A stretch of 64,000 bases of DNA from Vicugna vicugna (Eukaryota), in NCBI GenBank assembly GCA_013265495.1, contig MU060486.1, positions 248,001-312,000 of the forward strand, written 5' to 3'. This document shows, one piece after another, positions 33,162 through 49,234 of this stretch (positions are counted from its first letter, which is position 1; the number at the start of each line of letters is the position of its first letter). The notes beneath the pieces were generated by a model. The model saw nothing but the letters and a program-made list of their open reading frames with translations, ran no database searches and had not been told where the DNA came from. The position numbers were made by a program, and so were the translations under genes.

Positions 33162-33308
33162 CTACTGTCTGCTGTTGCCGTCCGACAGCTGGCCGGGGGT
33201 CCGCACCTCCCCCAGGGAGGTCGTGCCCTCGAAGCGCTGTGAGGCGATGGCTGCCTGGTGGGACATGCTCTTCCGAACAATGTCGCCCTTCCGCCACAAC
33301 ACCACCTC
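33162..33308 (-). CDS. VPS26B: VPS26B exon 6 coding part
   Basis: cag|GAG GTG GTG ... AGA CAG TAG; [13 protein letters not shown]...; 147 nt. Confidence 0.97.
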   Translation of the reverse strand, partial: EVVLWRKGDIVRKSMSHQAAIASQRFEGTTSLGEVRTPGQLSDGNSRQ

Positions 33309-36300
33309 CTGCAGAGTGGGAAGAAGTGGTGGGGGTGGGAAGACGTGAGGCGGCGGGGAGACGCAGTGGGACAGGGAGGGGTTTCCCAGGGGCTCTGACA
33401 TCTTCCTGGGGATCTCAGGCAAAAACCTCTGCCTATCTCTCAACAAAGACAGCAGATGTCCGTACCCCCCAGCCCTGGGGCTCCCGGGGATGGCGTGGCT
33501 GGGAGGGCAGAGTGGCCACAGGGGCTGGGTGTCCACGGGTCCCTCGTCCTGGCTGCGGGGCTCTGGGTGAACCACCACTTGGCACAGAGACTAACCAGCT
33601 GTCTCCCCGGCCCACCTGGACCTGGTCTGGCAGGATGCCCCACCCCCGCCCCGGTTCACCTGCTGCTTGAAGTAGCGCCGTTCCTCCTCATCGATCAGCA
33701 CCAGGTTGAGGTAATAGCGCACTGAGAACTTCTTGTTGATGTCCCGCATGGTCGGGGTGAGCTCGTAGCCTGCCAGGAAGAGCCGGATCGGGATGGACTC
33801 TCCTGCAAGGACAGGTGAGCATCAGAGCAAGGGGTAGAGCGACCCCCACCAACACTAGGCAGGGAGGCGCCGGGCGTAGCAGGGACCCCAGGCCCAGGCT
33901 TTCTCGGACGTGGCCTGCTGCCTGCTGCCCACGGACTGGCTGAAACAAAGACATGGCTTGGCCATTCTGTTCTGGCCCTGTCCTGTCTAACGAACGTCCT
34001 CTGCACTGAGACCCTACAGAGACAGTGCAGCAGGGAGCGCGGACAGCACAGGAGGAAGAACAAGGCGTCTGCAGACTCATGCAGTGTCTTTGCGTTGGGG
34101 TTTGAGAGCCTGTGGTCAGACCCTCAGCTATTCATGTGCCCCTCCCTCCGCCCCTCCCCAAATGCGCCTCCCCTCTGACGGGCTTGCAGGGCTTGGTGGT
34201 CTGCAGAACAGGAGAGCCTTGCTCTGGCTCTGGCTCCCCAGAGATGGCCGCTTGACTAAGTCTGGTGCTCCCGTGGCCTTGAACCTTCTCACAGAACTAG
34301 GAACTAGGAATCCAGACTACGCTGTAACTGCAAACGCCTTCCTGCTCTGAGCCTCCCCTAGTGCAAGTTAGGGCAGTAACTGCTGGAAGTGCAGAGTGAA
34401 GGTAAGTGTGAGGCTTCCCCACCGCATGCTGCCCGTCAGTGGTGCAGGGAGGAGGGCCCCCACCGCCCCCTGCAGGCTGGGAGCCGATGGAAGAGTGGTT
34501 GGGCTGGCTCAGCCCTGTCCTGAGGACGCAAGGGTCTGAGAAGCCTAGACACCACTCCCTTCATGGGGACCAGGCAAGATAAACAGAACAAGGCCCTGGG
34601 AGCAGCGGGCGCCCCAGATGGAAACACATCCTTCGTCACAGCGGCTGCAGAGCCCAGGAAGACCGTCCATGCCTGCTCCTCCCAGCAACCACCCCCGTCT
34701 GTCCTGGAGCCCCCACGGCCGCTGGAGCCCTGGGGGTGCTGGCTGGGTGGCTGCTCTTGGCAAGCAGACTCAGAGAATGAGTCATTTCACCTGAGCTAGA
34801 ACTAAGGAGAAGTGACTCTTCTGCTGTAAGCTCTCGCCCACTAGCAGCAAAGAAAGGATGTCAGTAAGAAAAAGTAATAAAATGTTCAAACTGTGTCTGC
34901 TAAACTAGCACTTTTCAAACATGTTTTGTTTTTCAAGAGGCATGACTATTGAGACGCAATCTCCAGTCCTAGCTCAGTCTACAGACAAGTCCAGGTGGGT
35001 CCCTCCTGGGAGATGGTGGGTGAGGGCCTCCCCACCTGCTCACTGGGCCCACAGTGCCCGAGGTCAGGGAGGTACGGGCTGGCCCCAGAAGCCCACCTTT
35101 CGTGGGGGTGCACCCCCCGAGCCCTACACGTGCCTGAGCCCAGCTCTCCCGGGGGCGCATCCCCCCCCAGCCCAGCTCTCCTGGGGGCTGTCACCACCCC
35201 CAGCCCAGCTCTCCCAGGGGCCGTCAACCCCCTCCAGCCCACCTCGCACGGGGGCGCCGTCCATGATCTCGTACTTGGCGATGGTGTCGTTCTCGTGGTA
35301 CACGTTGGGGCCCGTGCCGGTCGTCTCCCGCTTGATGATGTCGATCTCCATGTGCTTGATCTTGATCCTCACCAGCAGGAAGTAGATCTTCCCCACGATG
35401 ACGTCTTTCAGGTGGTATCTGCCAGGAGGAAGCACAGACGCAACGTATGGCCAGCGGCCGACCCCACACGTTACAGGCGCCTCTTTTTCTTCCCATGCAG
35501 CGTGGAGATAATAGCAGACTAAACAGAGCTCAACATGAAAAGCATCCTGGTTCCCGCACGGCGGGTGAGACGGAGGCACAGCACACACCCAGACCCCTGC
35601 CAGCCGTGCTGCAGGACCACCCGGCCTGTTCCAGACCCCTCACAGCGCCACCTGCAACTCCGAGGGCATTCACCCTGCGTGCTTTCGCTTCCTTTATCCC
35701 TCTGGCACTAGCGTGTGTGTTTTTCAGATACCCAAACATGTGAGAGGCCTGGCCCAGCCCACAGGAACCAGGCCCGCTCTTCCTCCCTGAGCCCCACAGC
35801 ACATCTTTGTGGCCCATGGTGAACTGCGGCAGGCTGCCTCCCGACTCCCCGGCTTCTGCCTGGGCCCATCAGCAGTACGGCTGCTCTGCACCAGGCATGG
35901 CCGGCGGCTCAGGACCAGGGTACAGGGTACAGGGTGCTGGCGGGGCTTCAGGGTTCAGCCTCCTGCATTACAGGTGCGGAAAGGGAGTGCAGAGGAGACA
36001 GGTAATCTACCAGGATCTGAGAAGGGGTGGACACAGGGTGTGAACCAGGTTCCCGACTCCCAGGCCTGCGTCTCCCAGCTGTTAAGTGCCACCTTTCTGC
36101 TTCTGACCTCACTGGGGAGACCGCAGACTCCCAAGGGCACTGAGAGAAGCAGCCACTCACAGCATTTCAGAAGGAAAGCTTACTGAGCACAGACTCTTGG
36201 TGTTTTCAGATGTTTATGAACTGGACGCTCCTTTACTCCGGATGAAATCTTACGTATAAGAAACACAAAGGAGCCGCTCTGGGGGGCCCCAACCCCCGTC

Positions 36301-39300
36301 ACTGCACCCTTCTACGGACCTGATCCAAACCCCTCATTTTTCAGATGAGAAACCCAAGGTACAGAGGTTTCAGGCCCTGCTAACCCGAGCCCAGGTCCCC
36401 AGTGGCAGAACAGGACGCTGTCCTAAGCTCCAGCCTGAGCACCCGCGATGCGGCCTGACCTGCAAGGGCAGGGCCAAGTCCGGCCCATCCGATCTCTGCG
36501 TCTCAGGCTCCACTTGGTCTCAAGCACACTGCAGGCTGGCGGCTACAGAGCTCCTACAAGGTGGCACTGCCTGCGGGTGCCCTTCACCAGGCGTGGGGGT
36601 GCTGGCAGGCAGGCACTTCGGGGGCTTTGCCCTAGGAAGGCCTGCCAGGCCCCGAGACTGAGAAACGGGAAGGAGCCTGTTCCCAACTTGTCCCGCCTGT
36701 TCCATACGTTGCCCTGGGCTCCAGGCTGAGGGCAGGGGAAAACGCAGTTCCCCCTTCACAGGAGAGCTGCCTGGCTCAGCCTGCTGCCCTGAGCCTCTGG
36801 ATGACAGCAGGTCTGAGGTGAGGGGCTCCCCCAGGGAGAGTCCTCATTAGAGACTCATTTTTTTAGCTCTCTGTGAATAGACTTTCACGCCTACACATTG
36901 GATTCTCAGACATTTTCAGGCATGTATTATACTGGAAAGATGCTCGTGGCACATTTATGAACTGTTGGTAAGTTTCGTGATGGACAAGCACGTAAGCGTT
37001 TTGATATTCTGACAGGAAGCATGGTTTCAAACATACATGACCAGTTAAAATAATTTAAAGGCCTTTATCAAAAAAGCACCAGGTACTCTGTGCTGTGATT
37101 CATTCTGGCTCAAGGTGGAGGCAGTAAACGGTGTTTGTTTCCTGCTTTTATTTCTAAGCACACACTGTACACGGGCTACAAATGGCAGTGGGGTGGTGTT
37201 CTGAGATTATTCTCATCAGTGGGAGGAGACAGCTGTGCCTAGAATCCAGAACAGATACCTTAAAGTCAGCTGTGCTGGACCCGGGAGGACATCATAGACG
37301 TCTGACGTAAGCTTGCCGTCTTAATGTAACGCCGTGTAGTTGAAGCAGAATGACGTTGTTTCCTGCTCAGCCTACTTGAGCAGCCTGGTGCACACAGTCA
37401 CCGGGCCACTTCTGCGGTGTCCCTGCCGCCGGTCCCCACGAGCCCCCACGCAGCCGGGCCCCTGGCACTCACTTGGACTTATTGTACTCGAACTCGATGT
37501 GCAGACAGTCCTCGATCCCCACCTCCATCTTGATGGAGGAGTTCAGCTCCGGGTACGTGCTCAGGGTGTGAACCACGATGTCTGTCTCCTTGACCACATC
37601 GTTGAGGCGCCGGCTGATGGTGGCTCGGAGGAAATACCTGGAGGAGAGGGGCGTGCGGTGAAGGGCCGCTCCCCGTCCCTCGCCCAGCCGGCCGCAGGAG
37701 TGCCCTGGACAGTGGGCAACTGGGGGCTTTGAATTTCTTTGAGAACTCACCTCTGGGGACCCTCCTCCCAGGAAAAGGGCACTTATACACAAAATTCTGC
37801 AGTTACAATTCCAGGGAGATCAGAGTGCCTCCCCCAAGCCGTCTCCGAGCCCAGGATGCTGCCCGAGTAAAGGTGACTTCTCTGCCTGCACCTGACGGCG
37901 GGCTGCACCTGGTCGTGGCCCCGCCCGCCACCTGCGTGCACCAAGTACAGGCTCTATTTCCACGACTGACTCCTGGCTCTTTGGCACAGAGATCTCATCC
38001 TCTAATGTTTGCATACCATTAATTTAACAATATTCGATTGATAAGTAGTTTTCAACCAGCCGTCCCAGTTAAAAGAGAGGACTAAGTAAGGGAGAAATTA
38101 AGTCAGCAATTCAGCCAGGCATAGGACAGACAGACAGACAGAGCATCCCGGGATGCTCACAGTGCCTGGCAGAGATGGGAAAGCAACAGAAAAACTGGAA
38201 CACAGGGCAAGTGCTCACTCCAATGCAGGATCAAGCGCTGCGGGGCGCCGGTTTGTTCAGGAGGAGCGAGCCTTAGAAGGAGAGCCGTGGAGGGTGGGCC
38301 GCGGTCTGAACAGGGATGGTCTTGGGCTGAGCCTGGGGTCCTGGGGACACGTTAGAAAGCAGTGGCCCTGTGGGTGGTGGGCCAAGCCTGACTGCTGGCC
38401 AGGGCTTCTGCATGGCCTCCCCAGCACCCTGTCCTCATGACTTAACTCTGCGCCAACCCTCAACCGGGGAAGAAACGGCCCTTTACTAAAGCCGGCTAAC
38501 CCTGCCTGGTCAAGCAGTCAGGTGTTGATGGAGACAGCTGAGCTGCCCTCCCTCACCGCCCCCAGGACCGCTCCAGCCCCTCTGACTGCTCAGGATCTCG
38601 GGTCCCTGCCCTGTGGACACGTTGCTTCCACGTCGAGACTCACGGCTCCCTCTCTTCTCTGCCCCATGCTGCTCAAGTAGGGAAAGGACACATGTCCCTC
38701 CCCCCAGCCGCGACGCTCACTGGAACCGCCCAGGGCACATCCAACAGGAAATTGCCCCTGGAGAGGGACACAGGGTCGACATTTTCAAAGGCCCCCAACT
38801 GGCTCTAACATGGGACCCTTGGTAGAGAACTACTGGCATCTTGACCCTTCAACTTTTCCAAAATTTTCAACACATCCAACCTCTCTCCCACTAAAGCATT
38901 TTTCCTTGGAGTTTATAAAAACCCATCACCATCATTCAAAAGTTCACAAACGATAAACACCGGAGAGAGTGTGGAGAAGAGGGAACCCTCCTACGTTGCT
39001 GATGGGAATGTAGTTCGGTGCAGCCATTATGGAAAACAGTATGGAGATGCCTCAAAAGACTGAAAGTAGACTTACCATATGATCCAGCAATCCCACTCCT
39101 GGGCATGAATCTGGACCGAACTCTAATTTGAAAAGCCGCATGCGCCCNNNNNNNNNNNNNNNNNNNNNNNNNNNNNNNNNNNNNNNNNNNNNNNNNNNNN
39201 NNNNNNNNNNNNNNNNNNNNNNNNNNNNNNNNNNNNNNNNNNNNNNNNNNNNNNNNNNNNNNNNNNNNNNNNNNNNNNNNNNNNNNNNNNAGCAACATGG

Positions 39301-42300
39301 ATGGGCCTGGAGATCGTCATATTAAGTGAAATAAGCCAGAAAGAGAAAGAAAATTACCATATGATGTCACCCATATGTGAGCTCTAAAAAAATGCCACAG
39401 GTGAACTTATTTACAAAACAGAAACAGACTGCTTGGGGAACTTTCACGTTCTCCCTCTGCCTGTGTAATGGCAACAAGCTCTCAATCTGGAGCGCTGGCT
39501 AACGTTCCCATTTTAACCTGCTCTCTCAGCACGAAGCCAGAAGTCCTCCTCTAATTGGACACTAACATGTTTCTTTTTCACCGTGGTAAAATACAAAATA
39601 CAGGTGCAGAGCACGCACCCCGAACAGGCCCTCCTGCAAGAGAACTCTACTGAGCTGAGGGCACCGGGCAGCAGCAGACACAAGACAGACCCCGCAGGCC
39701 CCAGAGGTGACCAGTGTCTGCAGAGCACACCTTGCTGCACCCCCCTGCCTGTGCCTCCTGCAACTTGCCTCCCGAGAAACGTGGGTTGTCTGGCTACTTC
39801 TCTGCACAACTGCTCCTCCTCTGGCAGGATGCCGCGAGCCCAGGTTCTCACCACCCAAGTGCTGGGCCGGGTGCTGCTGGACGTGCGGCACCCGTGGGGA
39901 GAAGCCTGTCGTGCGCCTCGCGCTCACCTGTCCTCCGCCACTCTGATCTGCAGGGCCCAGCAGACGAACTGAAGAAGAGTGAAGGAAGTCTCTTCCTCTC
40001 CAACAACAGAGGTAAGGAAACTGAGCACCTGAGCCATTTTCAGGTGCACAGTTCAGTGGCATGAAGTACGTTCGTGCTGTTGGACCTGGAGCCAGGTCCA
40101 CCTCCACCTCCAGCTGTCCTTCGACTTCCCCAGGTGACACTCTGCCCCGCTAAACACTGGCTCCCCCAGCGCCACCCTCAGCCCCTGGCAGCCACCACCT
40201 GCTCTGTCTCCGTGATTTTGACCAAGTGCCTAAAGTAAGTGGACAGACTGTGTTTGTCTCTGTGTTGGGGTGACATTCTCAAGGCCCGTCCGTGCTGCCA
40301 CGGCATCAGGACCCCCGTCTCCGATGCTGTTGGCTGTGTGTCTGTCTGGTCCATTCACTCGTCTATGCACAGGCGGTGCCCACCTTCTGGGTCCTGTGGA
40401 CAGTGCTGCTACGGGCGTGAGTGCACGTAAATCTGTTTAAGTCCTTGCTTTCCCTTCTGGACTTACACAAGCGGCACTGATGAATCAGATGGCAATTCTA
40501 CTTTAAATATTTCAAGAAATCGCCATACTGTTTTCAATGCCTCTCTTTCTGACATAAAACATTTCTGAGAAATCTACTGCAAAAAATAAAATTAAGCAAC
40601 AGTACACCCCAGTGCTGAGCTTAGGTGATGACTAGCTCGCCCTCACTGCAGCTTCTTCTGAGCGCGATCAGGCGACGCTGTCTGAGTACAGCAACCTCAG
40701 TGTGGCAACCTCAGTGTTTAGACCTCTCTGCAAAGACCAAAAAAGAAGAGGCTGCAGTTCCTCTCCTGCTGGGAGGGGGAGACCAGGGAGACGGGAGGAG
40801 AGGGAAGACCCTGCTGTAGCCCAGAAGGTCCCTCACCCAGGCCTCAGGTGATGACCAGGCCTGGAGCCAGGTGTCCAGAATACCACCACACACCCCGGAA
40901 TCAGTCCCCGCCTTCAGAGTTTCCAAGACTAGAACAGTAAAAACAATGCCATGTACTTAAAGATGGGTAGTAATTTTTTAAGAACTTGTCACACTGTGTT
41001 ACATGTTATTCTCTCATCACCCCAAAAGCTGGAGAGGGCAGGTGTCCATTTAGAATCCAAACCTATTCCCCACTTCTCCAGCGACAGAGCTCAGGACCAC
41101 ACCTGTGTGTAGGGCTGCACAGGTGTGTGGAAAGAAGCTGCTGGACTTTCAGGAACTTGACGTACCAGTCGTTAAACAGCATTTACACTTAAATGACACA
41201 TATTTACAGTGAAAAGAATGACTAAGTCACTAAAAACAAAGGTATCACATACTAGGACCCACTGCCTCCTTCCTAATGATCCTGGTAGGCCCCGGCTCTC
41301 TCTGCTCCCGGGGGCGCTCCTGCCCGGTCTGCACAGGTGATGCTGTGGGGGGCTGCTCCGCGCTGGGGATGGCTACACTCCAGAAGCTGACAACCCTGCA
41401 GACCGGGCCCCCCCACCCCGAGGGCCCCGAGACCAGGCACCCCTGCCTCGGCCACCCCTCTCGACACCCACCAGAAAGCTCAGAAATGGGCCGCGTCAAG
41501 TCCTCGTCACCCGGGGTCCTTGTCGCCAACTCATAGGGCTTCTCCACGTGCGTGAACTCAAAGTCGAAGGCCTGGGACTGGGTGATCTCCCCGGGCCGGG
41601 CCAAGTCTTTCACCAGGGACACAAACTCGTGGTGGTTCCCGCGGTCATAGTAGAGTTCTGCGGAGAGAGCGAGGCCTCCTCTACCAGACCCTGGGCTGTG
41701 AGCACCAAGCGGGGCTCCACGTCTGGAAGGCCCCACAGTCTCACTCACCACCCCCTCTCTTCCTGTCCCTTCACTACGGGCCCCCTCCCCTTCCCTTTGC
41801 ACAGAGGCACAGGGAGCCAGGACACTGGGCAGACCAGGGGGCGGGGGGAAAGGGGGTAAGACCAAGACCACCACAGCTCCTTAAACACATTTTAAAAACT
41901 TCTAACTTTTGAAAGCATATCCTCAGTTATTCAATCACATCATCTTTAGAACAACCTTGTGAGATAGCCAGGCCAGGCCCCTCACCCATGTAACAGGTAA
42001 GGAAGCAGAGGCCCAGTGGGGGTCAGTGACTGTGGTTCAGTGACTGTGGGTCAGTGAGTGGCCAAGTCACAGGATCGGTGGCAGGGCTGGGATGAGAGCA
42101 GGTCTCTTGCTGGACTGGTCTACTTCTGTAAGTTGGCCAAAGGGGCAAGGATACACCCCACTTCCTAAGGTTCTGTGAGCACAGGATCAAACAGGCCCTG
42201 ACAGACAGCAAATGCTCCAAGTGGGTGACTACCAGCTACGTCCACCCCGGGAGAGGGGTCCATGTGGCTGAGCTGAGCAGGGTGGCCGTGCTACCCCCAT

Positions 42301-45300: not shown

Positions 45301-48300
45301 GAAACCAGCCTCCACTGGGCCCAGGAGAGTGTGATGGAAGAAGCCCACAAAAGTGAGAAAGGGCACCCAGCAGCAAGGCTTCCCTCGTGGAGGTGCTTCC
45401 GCGGCCTGGAGTAGGGGCTGCACCTGCGCCGGGAGGGCACGCCACAGCCTGAGCGGGACGCCAGCCTCCAACAGGCAGCAGCAGAGCAAAGCCGCACCCT
45501 CCCACTCCTTTGCTCGGATAACACTCTCAGATCTGACCACCGTGTCCAGGCAGCAGTCACTTCTTGGGCACCCACCTTGTGCTGGCCGCTGAGACCAGAG
45601 GTTAGCCACCAGACTGCTGATGGACTGAAGGCAGTCCTTGGCTCCAGGGGCTCAGAACTTAGTGAGGGAGACAAATTGAAAAAAAAAAAAAAAGAAAAAA
45701 GAAATTCACCAGCTTACCCAACTCACTTGCAAAGAGGCACCAACGAGGCCTCCACAAGAACAGCGGACACAATGCTTCAGCTGGCCTGGGGAGGCCAGAG
45801 AGGGCTTTCTGCTGGACGCCATGTCTGCTGGGCTGTGAGAATGAGTGTGCTTAGGTGGAAGGGCATTCCTCCAAGACAGATGTTCACATACAAAGCGAAG
45901 ATGCCAAGACTCTCGAAGGGATGTGATGTTTTGAGGGAACTACATGTAGTGGGATGAGGGCTGGAGAAAGGCAGCTCAGGACAGAGCTGCATACTCTTCC
46001 CCTTCACTAGGGAGCCACTGAGGGGAATTCTAAGGAGCGGCCTGACAGTGCCACAATGCCTTTTTGAAAGTTCACTCTTAAAAAAGATGAACGGAAGGAA
46101 AAAGAACACAAAGGCAGGGAGACCAGTTAAGGGACTGCCACACACAGAAACAAGCAGGGTGGCGGCCGTGCCAAGAACAGAGGGGAGCGCAGATCCAAGG
46201 AGAGGCTGCCAGGGAGGACCCAACGGGACGCTGGGAGGAGGGACCAAGGGTCCAGAAGCCTCCCAGACTTCTGAGGCTTCAGGGACCCTGGCGACACGTC
46301 CAAATGGAGAAAACAGGAGAAGCAGAGGGGCCAGGGCTGGAGCAGGAAAAGAAGGGGGTTTCTGGCTTGAGGGCGTCTCCAAGGGGCCTGCAGGGTGTCA
46401 CCTGCAGGCAGCTGAAAACACGGGCATGGAACTGAGCAGAGTTCAAATTGGGGAGCCACCTGAGTCTGGGACAACACTGGACTTGTGGGCGCAGGTGACG
46501 CTGCCACAGCACAGCCCAGAGTGAGAAGGGAGGGGACAAAAGTGACCCCTCTTCCTACCCGCCTCCAAAACCAAGATCAACACAGGAGCTCTTCTAAGCA
46601 GGCCTGGGCCCCTGTGAGGATTGGGGTCTAAGAGGATCGAAGCATCAGGTCACCAGACAGCCGTCTCTGTAAGGACTCCATGGAGACCCTCCTCTCGGGT
46701 TGTCCCTCATGCTGGTGGGCCTCTGGAAGAGGTGGACCAGCAGAACAGGGGTCGTTAGCCTGGCATGAATGTCCTGTGGACAGTGTGCAGGGAATCAGGG
46801 GTGACGTTTTAAAGATCCAGCCCCTGGAAACTTCTTGTTGGATCAAACTTAACAGGCAAGAGAAGACGATGTGGTCATCTTAACTCCTCTCGTCAGGCAC
46901 CCATGGCCGGGCCACGCCCTGCACCTCTCATACCAGCGGCTCCAGTCCTCAGGGGCCCAGCAGAGTCAGAGTCATGAGACAAGCATCATTTAACCCACGC
47001 ACCCTGTCTGCTTGACCCTCAATCATGCAGCAGGCTGTCCCTCTCACTAATGCAGGTAGGATGCATGCACTTCCATCAGGAGGAGAGAGAAATTAATCAC
47101 AAGAACAAGGAGGCTAATTACATAAACTGCTTCATTTCCAAGCTGTGGAACTCTTCCAGGGAAGCAGGGAAGGGAAGAAAGAAGGAGGGAAAAAAGAACC
47201 AAATCCAAGAGACTGTGGTTGATAAGGAGAATAATTTTGAGTTAAAATGGAAACCAATGAGCCAGGTGGCCCCACAGAGTAAGACCGTCTCGTATCACCC
47301 TCACGACCAGACCTGAGAGTCTGACCAAAGTTCCCCATTTCATGCACAGTCGAGAAAGCAATGGAGCAGAAAACCACGGACCACAACCTCGGGGAAGTAG
47401 ACTCCAGCGCTGCTGGTGCCCTGAGGTCAGCTCGCTGAGCATCCTGGTACAGAGCACACGCACACCACCCCCGCACGAAGCATGGTCCCTTGACACCTCA
47501 GCGTTCTCACCAGGTGACTTCTGTTATCACCCCGGCCTCACAGGTGAGAAAGCCAAGGCCCAGATAGGGGTGCAGCTTCCCCAAAGTCACAGGTCAGCTC
47601 AGCCCAGAGTGCTCAGGGACTCATGAAGAGCTGTCAGGGGAGCAGTGAAGGTTCTGAGCAGATTCAGCAGGGGTGCCATTCTGGGATCCAAGGAGTTAGG
47701 CAAGAAAGTGGGCAGTGTCAGCAAGCAGCCTCCTCAAACCCTCTCACTTGCTGGGAGGGAGGCCCTGACACCGTCCCCAGAAAGGAGCATTGCTGGGCGG
47801 GGCATTCGGTTACTGCATCGCCCCTGGGTGATGGCATACACACAGACTACACGTGCCTGTCTGCATCCAAAGGAGAGCCAAGGATCCATGCAGTAAGTAA
47901 CCTTAGCACTACGGCGAGGAAATGCTGATTCTTTTGGGTTCACCCCAGCTAGCCAGGGGCTCCTTACTAGCGGTGATTTTACCTCCTAGGGATGTGAGAC
48001 ATCCCTGTGGCCACACTGGAAGGCGTTTCTGGTCTCTGGTGGGCAGAGGCCGGAGAGGCTGTTAAACATCCTACCATGACAAAGACTCATCAGGTTCACA
48101 ACGTGGACAGCACTGCGGGTGAGAGACCCCACCCAAGCAGAAGCAGGGGAGCAAAGTGAACGGAGCTTGCTCTTCAGCCCTCTTTCTAGGACATAAAAGG
48201 CCACTTGTATTCTGGGTTTAAAATAAGAACAGAAAGGTTCCTGTGGGGCCAGCCAGCCTCCAACCTGATCTCCTTTTCTTAAATACCAGAGACTGGGCTG

Positions 48301-49234
48301 CAGAAGCAGGCCACACAGCTGCTCTCAGTACTGCAGGGCTCCAGCGCATCCCGCCCTGTGAAAGGGGAAGGCAGGTTCTGTGCTGGGCTCTCCAGACAGG
48401 ACAGCGAGCATCCAAGGAGCTGTCCTAGGAAATCCCCCTAGGAGCAGTCCCAGGCGATCCCGTACACAGGGAGAGCGTGTGGCATGGGGTGTGAATTTTC
48501 TGCCAGGGGTTTTTCAGCCCACACAGGTTACTTACTGTGAATCTGCTCCTGAGCCAATGACAGGGGCAATTTATTTCAGGAGTGCCTACGAGTTTTAATA
48601 AACACAAGATCCAAACGGCCTTAGAACTGGAGAAAACCCGTGATGACTGGCAGCTCCAAAACCTGTACCGTTGCCGCCCCTTATGTCTATTTGTGGTGAC
48701 TAGTCACCATGTTTGAAGACTGATTCGGGAAATTCTATTTAATTTGGGTCTTAGGAGCGCGTTTCTTTGTGTTTAAGGAGAAGGTGAGACTACTCAAAAC
48801 TAGTTCTAATCAAGAAGTCTCAGGAATACTGGCTGGGCGGACAGAAGGGCCGCGCTGGAGTTCGCGGCGCCGCTTCCCCAGCAGCTGGGAGCGAAGGCGG
48901 GATGTGAGGGCGGGTGGGCCACCGGGAGAAGAAGGGGCGGGCGGGACGGGGGCCCGGGGCCGGGGTTGGGGGTCAGGGGTCGGGGCCGGGGCGGCCCGGG
49001 CCCGCACTCACCGATCTGCCCGATGAACTCGACCTTGATGCCCTGGTGCTCCAGCCGCTTGTTGGGGTTCTTGAGCGCCAGGCTCACCTTGCCGGACACC
49101 GTCTCCCCGTCGTAGAAGAGGAAGTACTTGTCCTTCTTCCCGTCCTCCGTCTTGTGCTCGGCCCGCTTCCTGCTGTCCGCATCGTTCAGCAGGATGTCCA
49201 CCTCCACGCTCTGCCCGAAGCCGAAGAAGCTCAT
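33162..49234 (-). CDS. VPS26B: Retromer subunit VPS26B; whole-gene CDS span, 6 exons; the 3' end of exon 2 is disrupted in this sequence
   Basis: join(complement) 49012-49234, [41530-41657 recognisable; expected end 41501], 37473-37637, 35243-35418, 33660-33802, 33162-33308. [12 protein letters not shown]..., [24 protein letters not shown]-tail [15 protein letters not shown] (B-paralogue type). Confidence 0.96.
33660..33802 (-). CDS. VPS26B: VPS26B exon 5
   Basis: cag|GA GAG TCC ... CAG CAG|gtgaa; [12 protein letters not shown]...YFKQQ; 143 nt. Confidence 0.97.
35137..35262. repeat. 32-34 bp minisatellite, ~4 units; the last unit overlaps the VPS26B exon 4 donor
   Basis: Units start at 35137, 35169, 35202 (AGCCCAGCTCTCC...) and 35236 (AGCCCACCTCGC...). 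Confidence 0.85.
35243..35418 (-). CDS. VPS26B: VPS26B exon 4
   Basis: cag|A TAC CAC ... CGA G|gtggg; [13 protein letters not shown]...DGAPVR; 176 nt. Confidence 0.97.
37473..37637 (-). CDS. VPS26B: VPS26B exon 3
   Basis: cag|G TAT TTC ... TCC AA|gtgag; [10 protein letters not shown]...EYNKS; 165 nt. Confidence 0.97.
38929..39430 (+). mobile_element. LINE-1 3' fragment (same young family) in VPS26B intron 2, containing a 143-N gap
   Basis: GGAAAACAGTATGGAG...CATATGATCCAGCAATCCCACTCCTGGG; AGCCAGAAAGAGAAAGAAAA; ends at ACAGAAACAGACT without an A-tail. Confidence 0.9.
39148..39290. other. Assembly gap (143 N) inside an L1 3' end
   Basis: N run counted directly. Confidence 0.99.
40020..40540 (-). 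mobile_element. Old L1M (L1MB/MC-like) 3' fragment, GC-shifted
   Basis: GGTGCACAGTTCAGTGGCATGAAGTAC, CAGCCCCTGGCAGCCACC, GTCCATTCACTCGTC, CGCCATACTGTTTTC resemble the antisense L1M 3' consensus (from memory). Confidence 0.8.
41530..41657 (-). CDS. VPS26B: VPS26B exon 2, recognisable portion only (ELYYDRG...EKPYE); the expected terminal SYTGQNVKLR and donor are absent
   Basis: cag|AA CTC TAC TAT ... CCC TAT GAG, then unrelated TTGGCGACAAGG...; no GT at the position that would give the usual 157-nt exon. Confidence 0.9.
41930..42120 (+). mobile_element. MIR SINE relic with an internal 14-bp tandem (TCAGTGACTGTGG, 42023-42060)
   Basis: ACAACCTTGTGAGATAG...CCCATGTAACAGGTAAGGAAGCAGAGGCCCAG...GGCCAAGTCACAG is MIR-core-like. 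Similar MIR traces at ~36330, ~47530, ~51480 and ~62260. Confidence 0.6.
49012..49234 (-). CDS. VPS26B: VPS26B exon 1 coding part
   Basis: ATG at 49234; ATC G|gtgag; MSFFGFGQ...EFIGQI; 223 nt. Confidence 0.97.

Follow-up and report, generated by a model that had tools for sequence, protein, structure and literature searches.

Short-read assemblies have been described to lose GC-rich parts of genes, and false losses of this kind are known from vertebrate assemblies (Genome Biol 2022;23:204, PMC9516821). In such GC-linked false gene and exon losses a coding segment is absent from the assembly and present in reads and transcripts, and short-read contigs break there. The VPS26B locus of the window (the whole 64-kb stretch of DNA that was analysed) shares these features, and it differs from those cases in that the affected segment is 67 nt only and that its edges are joined seamlessly, with no N gap. 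As to the gene itself, the comparison is with pig (P0013) and goat (P0017) VPS26B, a subunit of the retromer cargo-selective complex, which the gene of the window resembles in its six coding exons and, once 28 letters are restored, in its length of 336 amino acids; unlike them, the window as assembled is without positions 112-121 of the Vps26 profile. From our analysis it is very probable that the reference assembly lost 67 bases at the boundary of exon 2 and intron 2 of VPS26B and that the gene is intact.

VPS26B is found on the minus strand of the window in six coding exons:

49012..49234, minus strand: exon 1, with ATG at 49234 and the end ...CAGATCG|GTGAGT; found by tblastn with pig P0013, 74/74 identical; Pfam Vps26 profile positions 1-68
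41529..41657, minus strand: exon 2, the part shared by the assembly and the DNA and RNA contigs, 129/157 nt; profile positions 70-111
37473..37637, minus strand: exon 3, starting cag|GTATTTCC; tblastn and reconstruction; profile positions 122-175
35243..35418, minus strand: exon 4; tblastn and reconstruction; profile positions 177-234
33660..33802, minus strand: exon 5; tblastn and reconstruction; profile positions 236-275
33162..33308, minus strand: exon 6, coding part including the stop codon; tblastn and reconstruction

The translations of five of these exons score 52-99 bits each against Pfam Vps26 (PF03643), for which the gathering cutoff is 27, and this places the protein in the Vps26 family. 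Its best protein matches are named VPS26B, and the identity to pig VPS26B (334/336) includes the C-terminal tail, as for a B-type and not an A-type paralogue. Together the exons cover profile positions 1-111 and 122-275, and what the assembly is without is exactly the ten positions 112-121. The five exons other than exon 2 are intact, as had been stated earlier.

Exon 2 begins at 41657 after ...ccgcag and reads ELYYDRG...THVEKPYE through 41530 on the minus strand, past which the window continues with TTGGCGACAAGGACCCCGGGTGACGAGGACTTGACGCGGCCCATTTCTGAGCTTTCTG|GTGGGT; the assembled junction sequence is ...CTATGAGTTGGCGACAAGG... / ...TATGAGTTGGCGAC.... The 58-mer at 41529-41472 contains 5 CpG and has a single occurrence in the window. 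The first-pass annotation, made from the letters alone, had read the exon as normal up to ...EKPYE at 41530 and as followed by a 58-mer with 5 CpG, and this reading is confirmed from the sequence. As assembled, the end of exon 2 has neither SYTGQNVKLR nor a usable donor in the correct phase: with a GT donor whose first intron base is 41510 or 41471 the reading frame is shifted and a stop is reached in exon 3 after about 25 codons (amino acids 149, 162), and an in-frame GT is found at 41467. Recomputation agrees with what had been claimed for these three sites, and adds two further weak in-frame GT (first intron base 41455 and 41440) which had gone unmentioned. Neither SYTGQNVKLR nor degenerate DNA encoding it occurs in the six frames of the 64 kb, with up to 3 peptide or 6 DNA substitutions allowed, and so the end of exon 2 is not displaced to another place inside the window.

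Two further features are needed for what follows:

41528..41528, no strand assigned: the probable false junction, a lone base, T on the minus strand, in place of the 68 letters of the real DNA, the first 30 of which, on the minus strand, are CCTACACCGGGCAGAACGTCAAGCTGCGGT
41472..41527, minus strand: the sequence that had been called unrelated, ordinary intron 2 from about +41 after the true donor (X1 and X10 contigs, RNA depth 0)

Contigs of two public DNA runs (X1, X10) and two RNA runs (X15, X19) were placed on 41200-41900. Every contig piece stops at 41527 or starts at 41529 and none spans 41527-41528-41529 as assembled, to be read with the property of Logan contigs that they lose rare variants and show presence rather than absence. 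One DNA contig of X10 (3858 nt, organism D) covers both 41200-41527 and 41529-41900 and carries 68 letters instead of the single base 41528. In X1 (organism A) two DNA contigs break at the junction, within the missing stretch, and one of them has 26 loose letters before 41529, the reverse complement of which is CCTACACCGGGCAGAACGTCAAGCTG. Over 41529-41658 the X15 (671 nt, depth 177) and X19 (500 nt, depth 144) RNA contigs match the window at every letter, and their loose ends of 30 letters, reverse complement CCTACACCGGGCAGAACGTCAAGCTGCGGT, are identical over the first 26 to the loose letters of X1. From 41529, then, X1, X15 and X19 all extend with CCTACACCGGGCAGAACGTCAAGCTGCG(GT), which together with the T at 41529 gives the codons TCC TAC ACC GGG CAG AAC GTC AAG CTG CG|G, encoding SYTGQNVKLR. 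By the X1 and RNA contigs we infer that the 68 letters of X10 open with the same 28 exon letters.

Beyond this point the RNA contigs continue for a further 541 (X15) and 370 (X19) letters off 41200-41527, and they have zero depth over 41272-41511, which argues that they come from spliced transcripts and not from DNA contamination or pre-mRNA. An uninterrupted full-length VPS26B frame with SYTGQNVKLR is accordingly to be found in the DNA and RNA of the animals and not in the window as assembled. In a wider survey, 14 DNA runs (4 organism labels, 6 studies) contain an identical 0.96 share of the sampled 31-mers of 41200-41900, and six RNA runs contain 0.23 of them, which is about the size of the exon; for a 61-base query centred on the junction no run was listed, a result which is weak, as the query amounts to 2 sampled words, and is consistent with the others. 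The junction is thus missing from independent contigs and the lost letters are present there, as for an artefact. It had been proposed earlier that reads with a normal exon end would point to an artefact, and contigs carrying (T)CCTACACCGGGCAGAACGTCAAGCTGCG are what was found. Apart from these, a low-depth RNA contig of X19 (355 nt, depth 5.8, 1 other letter) lies on intron 2 at 41200-41259, and may stem from pre-mRNA or from the transcript of a repeat.

In DNA contigs of X1 (2127 nt) and X10 the sequence at 41472-41527 leads uninterrupted, with 0 other letters, into the downstream intron, and in X10 the part 41200-41527 sits 68 letters beyond 41529. Being joined to the downstream intron in the contigs of two runs, and following the 68 letters in X10, the 58-mer is to be regarded as the animal's own intron 2. 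The first-pass annotation had claimed that the last 29 coding nt and the donor were replaced by about 58 nt: the loss stands, with 28 exon nt and the donor gone, and the replacement does not, since 67 nt are missing and nothing is overwritten. A homology of the 58-mer to intron 2 of goat, in which GCGACAAGGACCCCGGG would resemble goat GCGAGAAGGCGTTCCCGGG, was considered as an argument and dropped, the local alignment score of 44.5 being no higher than that of shuffled sequence (mean 45.6).

According to the explanation that we favour, one spurious base at 41528 would stand for 68 real letters, which are the final 28 nt of exon 2, the GT donor and some 40 nt of intron 2. In the real gene, exon 2 would end ...GAG TCC TAC ACC GGG CAG AAC GTC AAG CTG CG|GT, with normal splicing to exon 3 and a standard 336-aa retromer subunit as the product. 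Most likely, a GC-rich stretch received few short reads, the assembly broke there and the contig ends were butt-joined by a gap closer or polisher; such a break and false join are suggested because the local G+C is about 67-70% (0.675-0.70) and because the X1 contigs end within the missing part. Neither a tandem nor a direct repeat that could be the source of a collapse is visible in the remaining sequence of the window, with 30 of the 68 missing letters seen. As the join is seamless and without an N gap, the drop-out mimics a splice-site and frameshift lesion. The local mis-assembly preferred in the first-pass annotation was therefore right in kind, the contigs carrying the normal exon end and never the assembled junction.

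The same arrangement could in principle have arisen if the reference animal alone, heterozygous or homozygous, had truly lost 67 bp by a deletion with a 1-nt filler, so that the donor is gone and VPS26B becomes a null or mis-spliced allele. End joining can produce deletions with a single filler base, the assembly does state this sequence, and the contigs examined are those of public runs; we nevertheless consider such a deletion improbable, because the 14 DNA runs are apparently without the junction words (their share is a uniform 0.96, and none is listed for the junction query of 2 words), because X1, which is among the 14 tied at the top share and is possibly the assembly's own sample, has the normal exon end, and because the junction coincides exactly with the breaks of the X1 short-read contigs, as it would in an assembly problem. 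The recent null allele that had been offered as the alternative to mis-assembly is excluded for the population and for the transcripts, and in the reference animal alone it keeps a slim chance as a private allele. Such a private deletion, if true, would mean that a single individual naturally carries a null or mis-spliced allele of a retromer subunit.

Two other readings are refuted by the contigs on 41200-41900, and we give each of them hardly any credence. That the end of the exon was overwritten in a gap-fill chimera by about 58 nt from elsewhere, foreign or unrelated, as the first reading of the letters had it, agrees with the fact that the 58-mer has no detectable likeness to the exon end and compares with goat intron 2 no better than shuffles do, and it is contradicted by the X1 and X10 contigs, from two runs with two organism labels, which show native intron and no foreign fill. 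Just as implausible is a change of the whole lineage, in which another donor is used and a different segment replaces SYTGQNVKLR, or in which the locus is a pseudogene: the flanking sequence is indeed present in many runs with four organism labels, but the DNA contigs hold the missing letters, the RNA contigs of high depth carry the canonical exon end and have no depth over 41272-41511, and the five other exons are conserved.

In favour of the assembly drop-out, the window exons together with the 28 contig letters make up an in-frame coding sequence of 1011 nt, which encodes 336 amino acids and ends in a stop. The first G of exon 3 supplies the end of the Arg codon CG|G, and the exon 3 start cag|GTATTTCC fits the GGT that closes the RNA loose ends. 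With pig P0013 taken minus its extra 30-aa exon, the restored protein shows 2 differences from pig VPS26B, T145/M and V323/A. A protein search with exon 2 and its odd tail against 5.8 billion proteins returned 109 VPS26/VPS26B proteins, none with the tail, and an exact look-up of the assembled 209-aa ORF matched none of the contigs in the collection. In all returned relatives that were read exon 2 ends with EKPYESYTGQNVKLR (SYTGQNVKLR), and likewise at the goat (Capra ibex) locus L001, where VPS26B lies between NCAPD3-like and EVE-domain (THYN1-like) neighbours. This locus aligns with the window exon by exon; the alignment of exon 2 ends at 41529, and the goat exon closes ...TACGAGTCCTACACCGGGCAGAACGTGAAGCTGCG|GTAAGT.

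Several other observations were made at these loci. At codon 145 in exon 3 (37571-37573, minus strand) the window reads VVKETDIVV where pig, goat and fin whale have VVKEMDIVV, and, judged from the sequence, M145T would be either a substitution specific to the lineage, in a protein that is very conserved, or a further error of the consensus. Intron 1 contains at 45778-45912 (minus strand) an open counterpart, 45% identical (tblastn E 2.9e-6), of the extra 30-aa exon of pig P0013 (ESWHLHFVCEHPSARNGLPSKLLLCSSSPA), which may be a conserved alternative exon or merely conserved intron sequence. At 38934-39106 in intron 2, beside the N run 39148-39290, the window matches goat L001 4376-4548 at 77%, in a different intron, and the segment is probably an interspersed repeat. 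In Capra ibex itself, the end of exon 2 and the donor are directly duplicated at L001:10097-10255, which puts another donor-like GTGAGT into the intron; the repeats are a 43-nt pair (93% alike, spacing 77) and a 31-nt pair (84% alike, spacing 87), and this may be a real caprine duplication or a duplication of the assembly.

We conclude with high confidence that the apparent lesion of VPS26B exon 2 is an assembly artefact and does not represent a biological feature. An annotation of this assembly would give a VPS26B model that is truncated, frameshifted or labelled "low quality", and gene-loss screens could falsely score a retromer subunit as inactivated in the lineage. The VPS26B locus is a clean case of a small GC-rich drop-out hidden under a seamless join, and its relevance is one of quality control only.
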